Source of the DNA: Blastocystis sp. Blastoise
Lineage: Eukaryota > Protista > Bigyra: Opalinata
Length of the DNA: 64,000 nt
NCBI GenBank assembly: GCA_039096225.1
Contig: JBBPEB010000032.1
Span: 806,001 to 870,000 of the forward strand
Direction of reading: 5' to 3'
In this document: in pieces, positions 5,248 to 18,820 of the stretch
Layout of the letters: each line of letters opens with the position of its first letter
Position numbering within the stretch: position 1 is the first letter of the stretch
The notes under the pieces: model-generated
What the model was told of the DNA's origin: nothing
The model's input: only the letters and a program-made list of their open reading frames with translations
Database searches by the model: none
Translations under genes and position numbers: made by a program

Positions 5248-5667
5248 TTAAAAGGAAACAGCTTCATCTTCATCTGTAGATAAATCGTTATCTTTTAAAG
5301 CTTGTTGATATAAAGGCAGAGAACATAAATTGGTAGAAACTGTTACGGAACGCTTTATACATGATACAGAATGACAACTATATATATATATATATATTAT
5401 TATTATTATTAAATATAACATATATATATTGTTTATAGTTTCTTATCAATAAATAATAATATAATTAAATATATATATACTTGTCTAATTTGTTAGTAGT
5501 AGTTTGGCATGATTTAGAGAGAGGTATATACGTAGAAGTACCTCCAAAATCATCTTTAAACATATCTACTATATACTGAGGATCACCCACCTGATTAGAT
5601 GTATTCTCTACATAACTATATATATATTTATAATTAAAGATGAAATTATTTATATTAGAATTAATAG

Positions 5668-8884: not shown

Positions 8885-11800
8885 TTATAAAGGAGGTAAA
8901 CCGAAAAGAGTCGGATCAAATTCATTCAATGAAGAAATAACCTATAGAATCATATATATATATATATTATTTATGTTATTCTTATTGAATAAAAAAAAAT
9001 ATAAATATAATAATGTCTAAAGAAAGATTTTATTACAATCGAAAATAATAGACACTATGGACATTTTTTCAGGTTTCTGTCAAAAGGTCCAACGACTTTT
9101 TTGTTTTGGTTTCCCCAGTGGTGAGCAGTGAAAATTTTTAAATATGTAGCTGACAAAAGGTTATTTGATTTTTCTGTTTGGTTTCCCCAGTGGTGGAGCA
9201 GTGAAAAAATTTTAAAGGGTAGCTGACAAAAGGTCCAACGACTTTTTTGCTTTGGTTTCCCCAGTGGTGAGCAGTGAAATTTTTTGTCAGAGTTTCAGTG
9301 ATTTTATAAAATCGAAAAGCAGTGCAAAAGTATGACGCACCTTAAAACAATAATTGGCGAATAAAAATGGTTTTAAATATTCTCTATTTTTTCATTTATT
9401 GGTTTTTTTATTCTTTTTGTGGTGTAATAATAAACGATATAACAAAACAAACAAATTAAATATTATCAAATAATCATAAAAACAAATAATAGAAAACAAT
9501 AATAATAAATATATAAAAAAAAGATAATAAAACATATAATAAATAATATAATAAAATATATATAATATTTAATTTATAATATTTCAACCAGGACAGTTTC
9601 AGTCTTTAATTTGCATTTAAGCCTAAGCAACCTATATAAAGAGATGATATTAGTTAAGTATTACTAATAATAATATATATATAACATTTTAAAATAATAA
9701 TAAAATAAAAAATATATACCTTTTCTAATCATTACAAGACAGGCAAGGAATCAAAGACAAAGAACCATCCTATAAAAGATATATGATAAATAGTATAATG
9801 AATAAAACAATATAATTAAATATATATATATACTTTTTATAAACCATTCTCTCCAATTAACAACAACGACAGCAACGGAACCCCTGGAAACCTATATAAA
9901 GATAGAGTAAGTTATATAATATAATAATATATAATAAAGTAAATTAATATAGAATAATAAAATATAAATATATACATTAATGCTATATAAATATAAAGTG
10001 GGGTTAGTTATATAATATGTAATAGATAATATAGATGATATATACCTTCTTTTAACATTGATTCCTTCCATTCTAGACCTAAAGAACCCATCTATAAGAG
10101 AGCCACGACCACACACAAGAAGGACCAGAACGTTTAAGGAGACCAGCAAGTGTCAAAACACCAAGCAGAGACAGCTACAATAGAAAAATGAATGAATAGA
10201 GTAGAAAAAATAAAATATAAAGAAACAGCAAACACCTACCATCATAATAGTATCATATATAATAAAATAAAAATAAAATTTAATAATATATCATATTAAT
10301 CATATAAGATATAATAAAATAAATATGTGATAAGTCATGTAGCATTTTGTTTTGTTATAAAAGGGTGTAATAGGAATTTAGAAGATATAGCTGAAATAAT
10401 GAAAATAAACATGAATAATCTCATATCTACTAAATATAGAGAATCTTCATCATAAGAAAAATGAATGGTTAAGAATAAAAGAGAAAGAAAAATTTTATTT
10501 CTATGAGGAAAATGGATATTGTTATTGTTATTTTCAATTTATCATAATTATCATAAGTAATACAAAAATTGTTTTATTTTAAAGAATTATATAGTTATTT
10601 ATCATTATATCATTTTATAATCAGTTTTGACTATGGAAGAGTGATTTTTATCCTTAATTGTCAAAATTATTTTTAGTATCACTCAGTAAGTATAAGTCTT
10701 TTAAAAAATAAATATAGGTTACAATACAGACTTATAGAGAAGACTCTGAAACTTCTATTTCCAGAATAAAAGTCATTTATATAATCCAGAATGATTGCCT
10801 GAATCATTATTTAAAGAATCAGTTTTATCACATATCTTCAATAAAATTATAAAATAAAGAAAATGAAGATAAAAAGGTCTAGAGTCGAAAATGTTATGAA
10901 ATATTATCTTTTTAATGTATTTGTCCCGATTTTTTATTAATCTGTTATCATAATATGACAAAGAGAGTGGTAAAAACATTTTAAAAGTGAATTAAAGCAA
11001 TAATTGGAATCAAGTTAAAGTCTTCTAATACCTTTAAATAGACTTGAAATACATAGAGTAAGCATTTTTTCATGCAAATAGTGTTTTTCATTTAAATAAT
11101 ATCAAAAACAAATCAAAATAGTATTTTATAATTACTCAGCAAGAACTTTTTCTAGTATTCAAGGACTTACTATTATCAAATATACGTATAAACAAACAAA
11201 AATCATATTTTATATATTTTTAGTTGAATAGTCGGAGTCGTGTTGATAGTTTATTATAAAACAAATGCAAAAATCACTTTTTTGTCAAAAAAAGTCTTAT
11301 ATCGATATATAGTTTTATTCATAATTTATTTATTGTCTACAAACTCTGTGTATTCATTTTAAGTGATTTTTAGTAAAACTAAAATTATTTGAAATACATA
11401 TTCTAATTTCGAAAATGACAAAAACATATTATATTACATATTTAGTGTTTAAATGAAGTTTAAAAGTTATTAAAATATCAATTAGTTAAAAAATATAAAA
11501 TATTGAGAATCTCCATTTTTATGACTTGTCTTAAATCACGTTAAAGGTGTATAATTGAATAGTTGCATTGATTATTTGTATGATTCTAGTAATATTTTCT
11601 AAGAATTTTGTTTTTTAACAAGAATAAATTCTTAATTTATTGTTTATCAACTTAAAAATGTATTTAAATGATTATTTTCTTGTGTAAAAGGGTATAGTGG
11701 TTATATGAAAAAAAAATTACGCAGAATCATTTGATAATATAATTTTGAAAAATAGAATTATTATTTTGAACTAAACTAATTTTTCACATATACTCATTAT

Positions 11801-13895
11801 AAAACGACTTGAATAATCTTTTGAGAAGATTATTTTGTTTTATAATACACTTAAGAAGTAATTGAATGTTATTGTGTCTCTTTTTGTTAAAAAGATTATT
11901 TTGAATGCTATTTTTGATTGATCTATATATTATCAATGCATTCAATGATGAAATAAATACATATGTAAAGAAAAAATAGTAATTGATCTAATTTATCTTC
12001 ATCTATTTGAATAGATAATTTTTGAAAAAATTAATATAATATAATTATTGATACCTATATATAAAGAATTAGTTATGTAATTGACCTTAAGACAGGAATT
12101 GAACCTGTTTTCTATCATAAACTGATAGATACTTACCAATATAAGCTTAAGGATAATATAGAATAAAAATACATAAATGAAAGTAAAATAGTAGGAATAA
12201 TGAGTCAGTATGATGTGTAAGGATATATTTATATATGTATAAGTGAAAAAGGATGCTAGAAGAAGGGAAAAGAAGTAAAAAAGAATAAAAGAGAAAGAAA
12301 TATAAAGTAAATGAGATAGGGTCTTTAATTATTGAGATTAATAAAAAAAATGAAAAATAATTTATAATAAATGACAAAGATAGATATATAGAGATCTATA
12401 ATAATAAGGAATGCAGAAGAGAAGAGGATTAGAGGATAAAGAATAAGAAGAAGATAAGGAAGATAAGGAAGAAGATAAGGAAGATAAGGAAGAATAAGAA
12501 GAAGATAAGGAAGAAGATAAGGAAGATAAGGAAGAATAAGAAGAAGATAAGGAAGAATAAGAAGAAGAAAAGAAGAATAGGAAGAAGATAAGGAAGATAA
12601 GGAAGAAGAAGAAAAGAAGAATAGGAAGAAGATAAGGAAGAAGAAGAAGAATAGGAAGAAGAATAAGAAGATAAGGAAGAATAAGAAGAATAAGAAGATA
12701 AGGAAGATAAGGAAGAAGAAGAAGAAGATAAGGAAGAAGAAGAAAAGAAGAATAGGAAGAAGAAAAAGAAAAGAAGAATAGGAAGAAGATAAGGAAGAAG
12801 AAGAAGAATAGGAAGAAGAATAAGAAGATAAGGAAGATAAGGAAGAATAAGAAGAAGATAAGGAAGAAGAAGAAAAGAAGAATAGGAAGAAGATAAGGAA
12901 GAAGAAGAAGAATAGGAAGAAGAATAAGAAGATAAGGAAGATAAGGAAGAATAAGAAGAAGGAAATGAATAATGACAACAAGAAGATGAAGAATAAATAG
13001 AATAATGATAAGAAAGAATAAATAGATTAATAAGAGAACAAGAGGATGAATGTGAAGAAGAGACAAGGAAGGAGGTGAAAAAAAGAAAGAAAAGTAAGAT
13101 AAAGAATAGGAAGAAGATATACAAGAAAATGAAGAAGAAGAGAAAGAAAAGAAAAGAAGAATAAACAAGAAACATATATAGAGAAACAGAAAGATATAAA
13201 GAAATAAAAGAGATAGATAGATAGATAGATAGATAGAGAGAAAAAAAAATACAAAGATATAAATAGATAGATACACTAATAGATGAATAGAAAGAAAGAA
13301 GAAAAGAGAGACATAAAGAAGAAATTAGATAGAAAGAGATAGAATTCTATATAGAATGAGAGATATACAAAAGAAATCAAATGAAATAGAGAATAAGATA
13401 AAAATAGATACAAGAATAAAGATAAAAAGAGAAATAGAGGAGTAGGGAAGGTGTATAAAAAAGAAAGAATATAAAGATAGGTAGAGAGGAATTGAGAAGG
13501 ATAGAGAAGGAGGAGGAAAACAGATAGAATTGGAAGACGAAGAAAAGAAGATGAGACGAAGAAGGGAGAAAAAAGGAGCAGGAAGTGAATATCAAGAAAG
13601 ATAAATTTATATAGAAAAAAATTAGAAAGAAAAATACATACAAAGAAAACGATAGGGAATGATAGAGAGAATTATAATTTGAATGACATAGAGAGAAGGA
13701 GAGACAAAGCAAGATAAAGAAGTATAATAGAAAAAACAAAGAAGAAAAAAAGAAGAATAAAAAAAGAAAAGATAGAACAATAGTATATGAGAGAAGAAAG
13801 AGACAGAAAGAAAACGGGAAATAGGGTAGAGACATAGAAGGTAATAAAATATATAGAAGGGGAGAGGGGATTGAGATAAATAAATAGATAGATAT

Positions 13896-13968
<73 letters not shown>

Positions 13969-16900
13969 GATAGAAGAATACCGAAAGATATAGAGAAGGA
14001 GATAAATATTAATAAAAAGGAAAATATGGATAGAGAGGAGATAGAATCAAACAGAGAAGGAGAAGTAGATAAAAGTCGATTGAGGGAAGAGAGAAGTAGA
14101 TTAAAATAAAAACAAATAGCAAGAGTTAAAAGGAAGAAGGGAAGAATATAGAATGATTTGAAGAATGAGATGTATATAGAAGTGAATAGAAGGAAATAGA
14201 GAAGGAGAAGTAGATAGAAAAGATTAAAAATAGAAGGAGATAGAAAGATAAGAGAATGATATAGATACAATAGAATGAGATAGAGAAGATAAAGTAGATA
14301 GAAATGGATAGAAATAAGAAAAATAAATAGGATAAGAGAGAAAGAGAGATAAAAGGATATAAAAGGATATAGAAGGAGAGAAAACGGATTGAGATGTAGT
14401 AAGATGGAAGGATGTAGATGGAAATAGAGAAGTAGATAGAAGATGATGGAGAATAAAGAGGAGATAGAAGAGGAGATAGAAGGAGAAAAAGAAGAAGAGG
14501 AAGTAAATTAAGTTAGAAGGAGATATAATAAGATAGAGAAGTAGATATACGTAGATATAAGGAAATATACGAAGATATAAGTAGATAAGAGAAAATAGAA
14601 GGAAATAGAGAATGAGATTGAGACACATAAATGAGGTAGAATGAGATAGATAAGGATAGAGAAATATGAAGAGAAATATAGGAATACAGAGAGATAGAAT
14701 GATGTTGAAAGAGAAAGAAAAGGAAAGACTGAAGATTGAGACAGAAGGAGTAGCTGAGATAAAAGGAAGATAGAGAAGGAAATTGAAAGATGAAGGAAGA
14801 AGGAGAGAAGATGAAAGAAGAAGAATATAGAAGAAGATAGAGAATGAGATAATAGGGATAGAAAGAGAAAAATAGGAAAAAAGATGGTTAGAAGAAAATA
14901 GAAAAGGAGAAAGAAGGAGAGATAGAAGGAGAAATAGAAGGATATAAAAGAGATTAAGAAAGAAGTTAGAGACAAGAAGATATAGATATATAGAAAGAAA
15001 TAAAAGGATTAAATAGAAGATTAAGATAGAAGAAAAGAGACAAAATAGAAGTAGATATAACAATATAGAGAATGAAAGGATAGAAATAAAAATAGAAAAT
15101 AGATAACTAGAACATAAGAATATATAATAATAGAGAGAAGGAGAGAGAGAAAAAAAAGTAGATATAAAGTGGAAAAGGAGACATAGAAGGAAATATAAAA
15201 GGAAACAAGAAGGTAGAAAGAGACATATAAGATAAAATAGACAGGGACAGAGAGAAATAAATGGAAAAAGAATAAGGATAAAGATGGATACGAGAATAGA
15301 GAGGGAGAGAAGGAAGATTGAGATAGAATTATACAGAAAGAGGAGAGAAGGAAGATAAAGAAGGAAAATAGGGCAGTAAAAAAAAGGGAATCAGAAGGAG
15401 GAGAGAAGAAGTATGAGAAGAATAGAAAGAAGGAAGAGGAGGAAGGCAAATAATAGAAGAGAACTATATATATAATAAATAGTGATATAAATATAAATAA
15501 GAAGATGAAGATCTGAAAAAAGCAAAGAATTATATGGAGAAGAAGAAGAAGAAGAGGAAGAGGAAGAAAAGGAGGGTATACACTAATACATGTCGAGGAA
15601 AAAGAAGTATAGAATAAGGAGAAGAGGATAACAGGATAAAAGAAAAAGACATAACGAAATACAATGTAAATAGAATAGTGATTAAGAAAGAGTAATGAAA
15701 GAGTGATATAAAAGGGAAGCGAAGATAAGAGAGAGGTATAATTAAAAAAAAGAAAAATAAAGGAATTTAGATAGAAGAAAAAATAAAAGAAAAATGAAGA
15801 TCTGAGGAAGATAATGAATCAAAGGGAGAGACAAGGATATAGGCTGGAGACAAGGCATAGGAAGAAGTAATAAAGAAAGAAGATGAAGAAATAAGGAGAT
15901 AAAAGTGTAGAAGGAAGAAAATGAAGAAGAGAGAAGAAGGAATCATTTTGTGTAAGAAGAAGAAATAAAGAAGAACTAGATAATAAATAAATAAATAAAT
16001 AAATAAATAAACATACCTAATAGAAAAAAATGAATTTGGTGATGTTGAGTCATAGGGAAAGATAACCAACAGAAACAGTAGAAAACAACCTAAATAAATA
16101 AATAATAATAAATAAAAATATAAAAATAATGAAAATAAATAATAAAATGAATTAGATTCTAATTTAAGAAAAAACAAAAAGAAAGCTAATAATAGATAGA
16201 ATGAATATACGATAAGTACTCTATTATATAATACTTAAAAATATAACAAAGAAAAAAATTAGAGATAATTATAAAAATAAATAAATACATATATACTTTG
16301 AAAGTAGTTTGACATCATAGACGTTGTTGACATGGACTGAAGAGGACTCTTATAACCATGGACGAGCAGGAACCTATACATGCTAGAGAATGGGAGAATG
16401 TTAATATTGATAAAGAATAAAAAATAGTAATATACATACAAGAGAATAATCTGAAGTTAAAATCAACTTCTATTTTTTAAAATAACAGCTAATAAAAATA
16501 AAATAAAAATAAAGAAAATAAGTAACAAATGAAAATATTTTCTAAGTTAATAGGCTCAATAGCGTATGGGTGTATTCAGGTCTTAAAAGAAAAATCATTT
16601 TTGCGGGAATATCAAGAAACTCAAAAAAAGTATTTTTTCCCTCCTTTTTTCACTGTCACTTTTCTTTAATATTTTTGACTTTTTAGTATTAAAAACGATT
16701 CTTACAGGCATGTATAGAGACTCTATACCACTTTTGAGACTAAAAATCAAATATTTAAAAATGAGTGAAAAATCTTGACTAGCAAGAAAAACAATTATGT
16801 GAAGCTGAGTATGTTGTGTATACACATATCTAACAACAGAGATGATAAAAACACACAACTCCTCTTGGTTTAGGACATAATTATGAATTCTCTCAAAAAA

Positions 16901-17959
16901 GCTATTTTAAACCTTAAAACGATACCCTGAACTATAAATCAAGTCCTGAATGATATTCTAAAGTCATATTTTTAAAAACAGGTTTAATGACGATAATCAA
17001 TAAACAAAAACAAGAGCTTCCGTTTTACTTTTCTTTTTTGAATTTTTAATTGTTTTGACTTTCTAGGGTAGTTGGCTGAAAGAAATGTTGTCGTCTTTAG
17101 GCTAAAAAATGATGAATAAAAAAGTCAAGTCATTTTATTGTTTTTTCCTTGGGAAATAAAAAAGAAGAAATTTTTAGGTGTGTTTTGGTTTAGGCTGTAT
17201 AATGGTTTTTATTGTAAAAGGACTTGACGAGAATGATTGAAATGATAATACATCACTCAGAGAACACACAACTTTAAAAAATTTGTCACTCATGTAATCC
17301 ATTCCTGAATTATAGACTTCAGAGAAAAAATTAAAGTCTTTTTGGTTTTAAACAGTCATTTTAAATCATAAAACACTGTAAAATAGTCAATATTTAGAAT
17401 GTCTATGATTATATAAATAAACAATATATTTTGTAGAGTTATTTTTAAGTTTTTCTCGTCAAAAAGAGAGAAACTTGACAAGTTGGCGGACACTCTTTTC
17501 TCGAGTTTAGGCCAACGTATTTTTGATTAAAAAATCCCAGTCATTTTGTTGTTTCTCTTACGGGAAATAGGGTCAAAAAAACACAAAATGTCCATAGTGA
17601 GATATATGCATATATACACATGTGATTCCTTGGAATTGATTCATATCAAAAGACTGAGAAGGAACAGCAACAACTTTCATATCTATATAAAGTATAATAA
17701 ACAAATAGTATAATATAGTATATATAACATAAAAATAGAATACTATTATAACTAATTATATATATATATACTAGCAGCTAGTGCGGCTTTGATTCCATTT
17801 ATTGAGTCCTCAAAAACAATACATTCCTGCGGGGATTTATTCAGCTTTTTGGCTGCTACTAAAAATATATCTGGAAACGGTTTACCTATTTATATATATA
17901 TATAATAAATATATATATTTATTTAATAAAAGAATATATAAAACAATGATTCATTAAAA

Positions 17960-17995
<36 letters not shown>

Positions 17996-18820
17996 AAAGA
18001 ATATATAAAATAATGATTCATTAAAACTATATATATAATTAATATATATATTTATATAATAAAATAATAAATAAAATAATGATTCATTAAAACTATATAT
18101 ATAATTAATATATATATTTATATAATAAAATAATAAATAAAATGATGATTCATTAAATATATATATATAAACATATATATAATAAAATAATATATAAAAT
18201 AATGATTCATTAAATATATATATATATATATATACAATGAACAACTCCTGGTTCTGAAGATGAAACTAAATAAGACATTTTACTGAAAACTTCCTATATA
18301 TATATATATATTATATTATATATAAATTATATCTATTTAAAGAATTCTAAAGAATATACAGGATGTGTTTTTGCTTTCCCTTCTAAAATAATTTTAGAAG
18401 ACGATGTTGCAATAGCTTGTTTTATATTATTATTATAAAAATATTCAGTTATTCTTTCTGCACCTGGCATATATGGAGATTCATAATTAGTTTCATTCAT
18501 ATATTGACGATAAAGTTTCATCTATAGAAAATGAAATTTATGATTATCATTCCAATTCAAATCAGTTTTAATAATAGACATAAACTTACGTATTCTATAT
18601 CAGTTATTACTTCTTCTAAATGAAACTCTCTAATAATCATTTGTATAGCAGCCATAGCTGTTTGACCTGAAAACCTCCGTTTTATATCAGGACTTAATTT
18701 CCAATTATTTGGAGATACGATTTTCAAAACTTTCTCTTTACATATATTAGAGATTGATTCTGAATCAGTAAGTGTTCCATCCAAGTCCCATATAACTACC
18801 CATTCATTTGTAGATGTCAT
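8885..18820 (-). CDS. HAD-superfamily hydrolase, pseudouridine-5'-phosphatase (HDHD1/PUDP/GS1)-like; 6 exons, last exon 8885-8941 behind an 8.7-kb intron
   Basis: Motif I WDLDGTLTDSE, AIATSS, KPFPDIFLVAA, VFEDSINGIKAALAA. Exon 17682-17618 (MKVVAVPSQSFDMNQFQGITC) splices in phase 0 to exon 8941-8885 (VISSLNEFDPTLFGLPPL*), matching the family C-terminal SLxDFxPxLFGLP motif. Confidence 0.9.
9081..9285. repeat. left subterminal tandem repeat, 3 x 73 bp
   Basis: Unit CAAAAGGTCCAACGACTTTTTTGTTTTGGTTTCCCCAGTGGTGAGCAGTGAAA (copy 2 diverged) starts at 9081, 9154 and 9227. Confidence 0.9.
12084..12152 (-). ncRNA. tRNA-like cloverleaf (non-canonical; probably not a decoding tRNA)
   Basis: Minus strand reads CCTTAAG CTTA-TATTGG-TAAG TA TCTATCA-GTTTA-TGATAGA AA ACAGG-TTCAATT-CCTGT CTTAAGG T: four fully paired stems (7/4/7/5 bp) and a perfect B box GGTTCAATTCC, but no 8-9 linker and no U33 anticodon loop. 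Confidence 0.7.
12153..16010. repeat. ~3.9-kb purine-rich (A/G on +, C-depleted) low-complexity tract with GAA/GAT/AAG/TAA core (about 12440-12960) and (GATA)n runs (about 13210-13240, 13885-13970)
   Basis: Direct inspection: extreme strand asymmetry; the triplet phase of the core is broken by 2-nt slips, e.g. near 12570. Confidence 0.9.
17071..17570. repeat. right subterminal degenerate direct repeat (~90 bp x 2, at 17071-17158 and 17482-17569)
   Basis: GTTGGC...TCG..TTTAGGC...AAAAAA..C.AGTCATTTT.TTGTTT......GGGAAATA is shared by both copies. Confidence 0.6.

Follow-up and report, generated by a model that had tools for sequence, protein, structure and literature searches.

Modules for tRNA-like processing have been described in plant organelles, in RNA viruses and in a small number of vertebrate long non-coding RNAs. 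The mascRNA/MEN-beta RNAs of MALAT1 and NEAT1 (RF01684) are non-decoding cloverleaves with an intact acceptor/T half and a reduced anticodon arm, placed where a long non-coding stretch has its 3' end; the handling of mascRNA by RNase P and RNase Z is established (PMC8457004). The t-elements of plant mitochondria and the tRNA punctuation of organellar transcripts likewise use tRNA-like folds as RNase P/Z signals that define mRNA ends (PMC1920247), and in dicistronic tRNA-5S rRNA and tRNA-snoRNA genes a tRNA-type internal promoter and RNase P/Z release linked RNAs (PMC2566860). Non-autonomous CACTA (EnSpm/CMC) transposons, for their part, carry captured cargo (Pack-CACTA; PMC6379663). Here we describe a tRNA mimic of Blastocystis sp. 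Blastoise, located at 12084-12152 on the minus strand of a 64,000-nucleotide stretch of contig JBBPEB010000032.1 (positions 806,001 to 870,000; hereafter the window). The mimic is cargo of DNA transposons and not a feature of a host gene, and about 290 related modules occur genome-wide. With moderate confidence, we read these modules as a selected family of non-decoding tRNA mimics that DNA transposons carry and whose handling would fall to RNA polymerase III (Pol III)/TFIIIC and to RNase P/Z.

The mimic shares with mascRNA and MEN-beta the shape and the position described above, and the same RNase P/Z handling is expected of it. It differs from them in giving no Rfam match at E<=10, in having a polypyrimidine tract where the triple-helix element would be, and in numbering about 290 transposon-borne copies as opposed to one conserved host locus, many of them with a putative T-run terminator of their own. 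Where two mimics bracket a segment of 4.1-4.3 kb, the unit resembles organellar tRNA punctuation; unlike t-elements, however, the mimics are nuclear, transposon-borne and Pol III-like in their features. Whereas the dicistronic genes join a decoding tRNA to a known RNA partner, here there is a mimic without a defined partner. The element that carries the window copy resembles Pack-CACTA elements in its CACTA termini, 3-bp duplications, subterminal repeats, lack of a transposase and internal foreign cargo. That cargo, however, is non-coding (the polypyrimidine tract and the mimic) rather than made of host exon fragments, and the mimic module is common to other transposon superfamilies.

A linker-less cloverleaf and its family

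The original prediction, made from the window's sequence, was of a 69-nt tRNA-like structure with 23 of 23 stem positions paired, a TTCAATT T-loop and GG in the D-loop, lacking the nt 8-9 connector and a standard anticodon loop. Inspection of the sequence and computed folding bore out all of these features, which are arranged as follows.

12084-12152, minus strand: tRNA mimic, a 68-nt linker-less cloverleaf (12152 to 12085) followed by the discriminator T (12084); identified from sequence, fold, family model and covariation
12146-12152, minus strand: 5' strand of the acceptor stem, CCTTAAG, partner of 12085-12091; from sequence and from double changes in six of the seven acceptor pairs family-wide
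12132-12145, minus strand: D arm, CTTA-TATTGG-TAAG, which abuts the acceptor stem without nt 8-9; from sequence
12109-12131, minus strand: anticodon-like arm, a 7-bp stem TCTATCA/TGATAGA (extendable by T22-A44) with the 5-nt loop GTTTA; non-decoding; from sequence
12092-12108, minus strand: T arm, ACAGG-TTCAATT-CCTGT, which includes the B-box-like GGTTCAATTCC at 12095-12105; from sequence
12085-12091, minus strand: 3' strand of the acceptor stem, CTTAAGG; from sequence and family covariation

The stems of 7, 4, 7 and 5 pairs are Watson-Crick throughout, and the residues that border the middle stem (TA before it, AA after it) offer T22-A44 as a possible 24th pair. The GG lies at the end of the D-loop, and the middle-arm loop has 5 nt, or 7 nt if its closing A-U pair is opened. 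RNAfold returned the same cloverleaf as both the minimum free energy and the centroid structure, at -20.5 kcal/mol; 200 dinucleotide shuffles gave -9.6 +/- 2.5 kcal/mol, none of them as good (z -4.37). The window copy therefore combines the features of a tRNA that lie outside its decoding half (a 7-bp acceptor stem, a 5-bp T stem, a T-loop of the form TTCRANN and the D-loop GG) with an architecture that departs from that of a canonical decoding tRNA, which has a 5-bp anticodon stem, a 7-nt anticodon loop with U33 and linkers at 8-9, 26 and 44-48: the middle stem has 7-9 bp, its loop has 5 nt (about 4-8 nt family-wide), residues 8-9 are missing and no more than two unpaired residues occupy a junction.

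To place this fold among its relatives, we searched the organism's own assembly (34 contigs, 33,340,088 bases, about 24% GC). A BLAST search with an 86-nt query around the fold found 38 places, 20 of which were 100% identical, flanks included. A covariance model built from five variants (R1) gave at least 150 full-length matches at 40-101 bits, the window copy scoring 100.8 bits, and a pattern that runs from the D-loop GG to the T arm matched 290 times genome-wide, compared with 0 matches for the reversed control. In the largest family, designated B, one 21-mer occurs 100 times.

The comparison of copies for covariation, proposed with the original prediction, was made on about 40 diverged copies, from which 33 distinct sequences were aligned with the cloverleaf extended by pairs 22:44 and 23:43. 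Among these sequences 95.5% of pairing cells were paired, compared to 82.1 +/- 0.8% in shuffles and 36-44% when partners were slid. Changes on both sides were found in 17 of the 25 pairs, a count that none of 500 shuffles reached; these double changes fell in six of seven acceptor pairs, two of four D pairs, eight of nine middle-arm pairs and the outer pair of the T stem. The stem changes were thus compensatory and not disruptive. The prediction had held that the structure was non-decoding and not a decaying pseudogene, and this pattern, together with the negative ARAGORN and Rfam searches reported below, upholds that view.

The family holds constant, or nearly so, the T-stem core and its T-loop (CAGGTTCAAYTCCTG), the GG of the D-loop, the first (CT/AG) pairs of the D stem and the lack of linkers. 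The D arm keeps its outer CT/AG pairs and the G at loop column 16 in every sequence and G17 in at least 90%, and its inner two pairs covary. Within the T arm, the three inner stem pairs (CAG/CTG) and the loop TTCAA are near-invariant (pair 46:60 is broken in 1 of the 33 sequences), and the outer pair covaries between A-U and U-A. The middle-arm loop varies between families in both length (about 4-8 nt) and sequence. The decoding parts, namely the anticodon arm, are free to vary and the linkers are absent; the conserved parts are those read by tRNA enzymes and TFIIIC, comprising the 12-bp acceptor/T stack, the elbow formed by the T-loop and D-loop GG, and the B-box GGTTCAATTCC. The mimics are unable to read codons and therefore, most likely, serve to be recognized by the machinery with which the cell makes its tRNAs.

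Two pairs could be followed through an intermediate. Pair 26:40 of the CACTA lineage is T-A in the main family, A.A in a single copy (L025) and A-T in an 11-copy subfamily. Pair 29:37 of the B family passes from C-G through U.G to U-A, with the U.G form present in many copies; this intermediate favours an RNA of the mimic's polarity, because the other strand would have an A.C mismatch. Overall identity between the two CACTA subfamilies is about 75-78%, but the module differs at only 5 of its 69 positions (binomial p about 0.001), none of the five differences breaking a pair, and a sliding-window comparison of the subfamilies ranked the module among their best-conserved non-repetitive segments. 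We conclude that the fold has most likely been kept under selection through compensatory changes.

DNA transposons as carriers

Flanks were examined for about ten loci that represent six sequence families, and each of these copies sits within a longer repeat; most families' contexts were sampled at 109 nt to 6.6 kb. In the window, the fold lies 3 kb inside the following element.

9053-17599, no strand assigned: 8,547-bp transposase-less CACTA-type DNA transposon, host of the mimic; from copy comparison, terminal inverted repeats and target duplications

Its terminal inverted repeats (CACTATGGACATTTT; 9053-9067 and 17585-17599) are perfect over 15 bp and are bordered by a 3-bp target duplication, AGA (9050-9052 and 17600-17602). 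In a comparison with six other copies, which showed the repeat to span 9053-17599, five were 99.1-99.9% identical over about 8.55 kb and the sixth (C34) 96%, and the 3-bp duplications (AGA, ATG, TTA and AAT) were exact in four of the five copies checked. Between 9053 and 17599 we found no open reading frame (ORF) longer than 85 aa outside a low-complexity tract, where all longer frames lie, and no Transposase_21-type transposase frame. Because it has no long ORF outside that tract, the element is a non-autonomous transposon of the CACTA type. This main family and its relatives together account for 36 mimic-carrying copies.

Several further observations concern the CACTA elements. Just inward of the left terminal repeat, 9081-9330 of the window holds three copies of an about 70-bp subterminal repeat with CCCCAGTGGTGAGCAGTG, which are probably transposase-binding repeats. 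Four Transposase_21 (PF02992, CACTA-type) frames of 744-758 aa without stops are present elsewhere in the genome (C5:500192, C19:220920, C23:205345 and C23:375036); they are candidate trans-acting sources, and none could be tied to the window's CACTA family. At C13:910701-926222 (L041/L042) two CACTA copies lie head-to-tail, one of them full-length and the other reaching the start of the sampled stretch.

Mimics were also found in other kinds of repeat. Downstream of MULE transposase (PF10551) frames of 668-692 aa, a C-type mimic lies on the same strand at a distance of 11.9-12.2 kb in seven of seven copies (C8:23982, C13:1285511, C14:1316345, C19:198797, C20:55491, C23:134815 and C31:614933). 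Such a fixed spacing implies what would be a very large (>12 kb) Mutator-like element (MULE) with non-coding cargo. In a further type, represented by L044 and present in two copies, the mimic lies 1.7 kb downstream of the C-terminal fragment of an SF1 helicase, with a pyrimidine-rich tract in between. The helicase frame (UvrD/Pif1-like C-terminus; L044:2-322, C16:807298-807618) is possibly the end of a Helitron Rep/Hel gene.

In many units two mimics, each of another subtype, follow one another in direct orientation at a spacing of 4.1-4.3 kb. In one such unit, L230, the mimics occupy 1136-1204 and 5454-5520 (C1:132935-137319), no ORF lies between them, and about 600 nt of polypyrimidine tract lead up to the second, which is followed by T7. 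To judge from their layout, the two-mimic units look like tRNA-style punctuation of a non-coding unit. The same 4.1-4.3-kb spacing recurs on contigs C3, C5, C6, C7, C8 and C10, and B-type units also occur in tandem, spaced by about 3.16 kb on C4 and about 6.8 kb on C1. On the minus strand of L230, at 907-955, next to the first mimic and 25 nt before a B-type mimic, an AT-rich region contains a GC-rich palindromic hairpin with CTAG about 11 nt later, an arrangement that resembles a Helitron 3' terminus. The MULE and Helitron-like superfamily labels of the non-CACTA carriers are candidate assignments that have been partly tested.

Of the alternatives to a selected mimic family, the one that survives best, although we consider it unlikely, is that the module rides along as a neutral passenger: a Pol III gene of tRNA origin, or the head of something like a short interspersed nuclear element (SINE) that was captured repeatedly, its covariation coming from a master gene elsewhere. 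Most copies are indeed young and near-identical within families, decaying copies exist (two acceptor mismatches in L080, a truncation in L079), and A.C mismatches occur only as singletons, all of which suit a passenger. Against this stand the compensatory replacement at pair 26:40, which took place within the CACTA lineage itself, and the conservation of the CACTA module, which far exceeds that of its non-repetitive flanks. The location of all of the examined loci within longer repeats and the fixed position in each element (MULE, 7/7; two-mimic units, 4.1-4.3 kb) also speak against capture of a passenger.

The mimics do resemble tRNA-derived SINE heads in being tRNA-related, multi-copy and dispersed, in having a B-box and in having drifted toward AT relative to real tRNAs. 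Unlike SINEs, however, they occupy fixed internal positions in 3-12-kb repeats (CACTA, MULE and helicase-linked) with no independent tail or target duplication, and they maintain the whole cloverleaf through compensatory changes, something a SINE head can do without. These fixed internal positions within large DNA transposons give no support to a classic SINE. The original prediction had listed a SINE-like Pol III promoter among its possibilities; the B-box and the T-run found downstream in most families fit its Pol III part, and its SINE part gained no support.

Possible signals for transcription and processing

GGTTCAATTCC is invariant in the family, matches the B-box consensus and resembles the corresponding part of the genome's real nuclear tRNA genes. 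A run of at least five T residues sits 10 to 13 nt past the discriminator in 22 of 36 distinct copies, compared to 7% of random 20-mers, and the sequence between the discriminator and this run differs between families. Among the real nuclear tRNA genes sampled, 14 of 14 have a T-run of at least four close downstream. Together, the invariant B-box and the downstream T-runs point to genes of the Pol III type.

On either side of the window copy lie two further features of the RNA strand.

12153-16010, minus strand: about 3.9-kb polypyrimidine tract directly upstream of the mimic on the RNA strand (purine-rich on the plus strand); from composition
12025-12030, minus strand: first downstream T-run (T6), 54-59 nt past the discriminator, a possible distant Pol III stop; from sequence

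The tract, which the original prediction had placed immediately before the fold, is real. Over 12001-16000 the plus strand has a GC skew of +0.77 to +0.89 and an AT skew of +0.53 to +0.59, and pyrimidines make up 69-93% of the RNA strand over the 1 kb upstream of the fold. In agreement with the earlier remark that no MALAT1-type triple helix precedes the fold, this upstream 1 kb contains no A-rich tract and no triple-helix (U-rich/A-rich) element. The adjacency of tract and fold is not peculiar to the window, as the same order was found in two other element types, L044 and L230, making three carrier types in all; this recurrence fits the suggestion in the original prediction that a C/U-rich RNA is ended by RNase P cleavage.

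We infer transcription, cleavage and a benefit to the transposon. The module would be transcribed from its own Pol III-type internal promoter or, in the window copy, as the tail of a long polypyrimidine transcript, and the transcript would fold like a pre-tRNA. RNase P would then cut the window copy at 12153|12152 and RNase Z after 12084, releasing a small RNA of roughly 68 nt and defining, on either side of it, the 3' terminus of the RNA upstream and the 5' terminus of whatever comes next. A broader form of this proposal, which we regard as plausible and offer tentatively, is that transposons of at least three superfamilies (CACTA, Mutator-like and Helitron-like) share, exchange and keep under selection one linker-less tRNA mimic, in many cases with a polypyrimidine tract before it and a T-run after it. 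Through this module they would co-opt TFIIIC/Pol III, RNase P and RNase Z, either to produce their own RNAs or to terminate them.

Several observations weigh against a selected, Pol III- and RNase P/Z-handled mimic. The match to the A-box is partial (CT..A.(T)GG); the window copy has no nearby T-run, its first T6 beginning at +54; and T4-T5 runs inside the fold in L080, L078 and B1 would hinder Pol III. The polarity of the RNA is not fixed by wobble pairs alone, since G.U was counted in 15 cells and A.C in 9. Part of the covariation between families could stem from constraint on a master gene that has escaped notice, and a four-way junction that lacks linkers may fail to take on the L-shape of a tRNA.

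Some of these signals could also act as DNA. We think it distinctly unlikely that the module is a DNA-level element only, with a B-box that recruits TFIIIC/Pol III as a boundary or open-chromatin mark against silencing of the transposon or its neighbours and an RNA fold that is irrelevant. tRNA genes have boundary activity, which lends this idea some weight, as do the standing of GGTTCAATTCC as the most invariant part of the module and the T-runs and TATA-like (TA)n stretches that flank many copies. Function of an A- or B-box, however, needs no stem complementarity, yet all four stems covary (17 of the 25 pairs), and a wobble intermediate has been tolerated in the B family. Selection on the folded mimic accounts for this stem covariation, and we continue to prefer it.

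Neighbouring gene, known tRNAs and significance

On the same strand as the mimic, upstream of the insertion, lie the exons of a possible host gene.

17573-18820, minus strand: HAD-family phosphatase exons; from ORFs and sub-threshold HAD_2 matches

The HAD_2 matches (profile positions 1-64 at 19.5 bits and 65-114 at 14.6 bits) fall below the cut-off of 23.8, and the HAD_2-like exons, which contain the motif DLDGTLTDSE, end a few codons from the CACTA insertion point at 17599/17600. The shared strand is what would favour reading the fold as a feature of the HAD gene, either a small RNA housed in an intron or a site whose processing regulates the HAD pre-mRNA. This is very improbable, as the fold lies 3 kb within a mobile element with target-site duplications, and no fewer than 20 further copies have the identical module with its flanks; the five that were checked completely are at different target sites. 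Because the element is mobile and multi-copy, the HAD neighbourhood is incidental, an accident of insertion. The suggestions in the original prediction that flanking GT and AG mark an intron-hosted small RNA, and that cleavage would cut the HAD pre-mRNA, are accordingly set aside in favour of mobile CACTA cargo.

Weakest of all, and hardly credible, is a decoding tRNA of unusual form, or an organellar tRNA copied into the nucleus, for although the shape is a cloverleaf with a canonical T-loop and one member reaches 19.7 bits against the Rfam tRNA model, the middle loop has 5 nt and varies between families in length and sequence, ARAGORN and Rfam are negative, the organellar tRNAs are normal and unrelated, and the nuclear tRNAs are G+C-rich, fully canonical and recognized by ARAGORN.

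The searches behind this judgement were as follows. ARAGORN found 0 tRNA genes in the window and in loci L043 and L044. Rfam gave no match in the window at the gathering score and, over 11950-12300 at E<=10, neither a tRNA-like match nor a match to mascRNA-menRNA (RF01684); the 19.7 bits of the best family member against RF00005 compare with a cut-off of 29. Membership in the canonical tRNA or mascRNA families was rejected on these negatives. The prediction had named identity to an organellar tRNA, that is, a nuclear insertion of organellar DNA, as a possible alternative. No such identity was found: the 86-nt BLAST query had no match on organelle contigs C9 and C12, whose ordinary tRNAs score at most 24 bits against R1, compared to 45-101 bits for family members, and this reading was rejected as well. 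Metagenome contigs scanned with a T-arm/acceptor pattern yielded no family member among the matches listed, a weak negative; 80 loci were scored, all at 34 bits or less, and those checked were ordinary tRNAs.

The organelle-type contigs C9 (33,309 bp) and C12 (19,368 bp), with loci L045-L048, have bacterial-type small- and large-subunit rRNA genes in an inverted repeat, together with 23 or more ordinary tRNA genes; C12 has the look of part of C9 assembled a second time in the opposite orientation.

Our literature searches turned up no account of tRNA-like modules, either for DNA transposons or for Blastocystis; the genome paper on tortoise-isolate Blastocystis leaves tRNAs unmentioned and sums up transposons simply by their percentage shares of the genome (PMC12129017). 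If our reading is true, the mimics would represent a transposon strategy not described before, in which mobile DNA, both of the cut-and-paste and of the rolling-circle kind, likewise recruits the tRNA machinery, and a mascRNA-like processing whose origin is independent of vertebrates. The about 290 natural variants, with their many compensatory changes, could define what RNase P/Z or TFIIIC need when linkers and an anticodon loop are missing. For the organism itself, the mimics and their carriers would explain part of the non-coding cargo that inflates the genomes of tortoise-clade Blastocystis.

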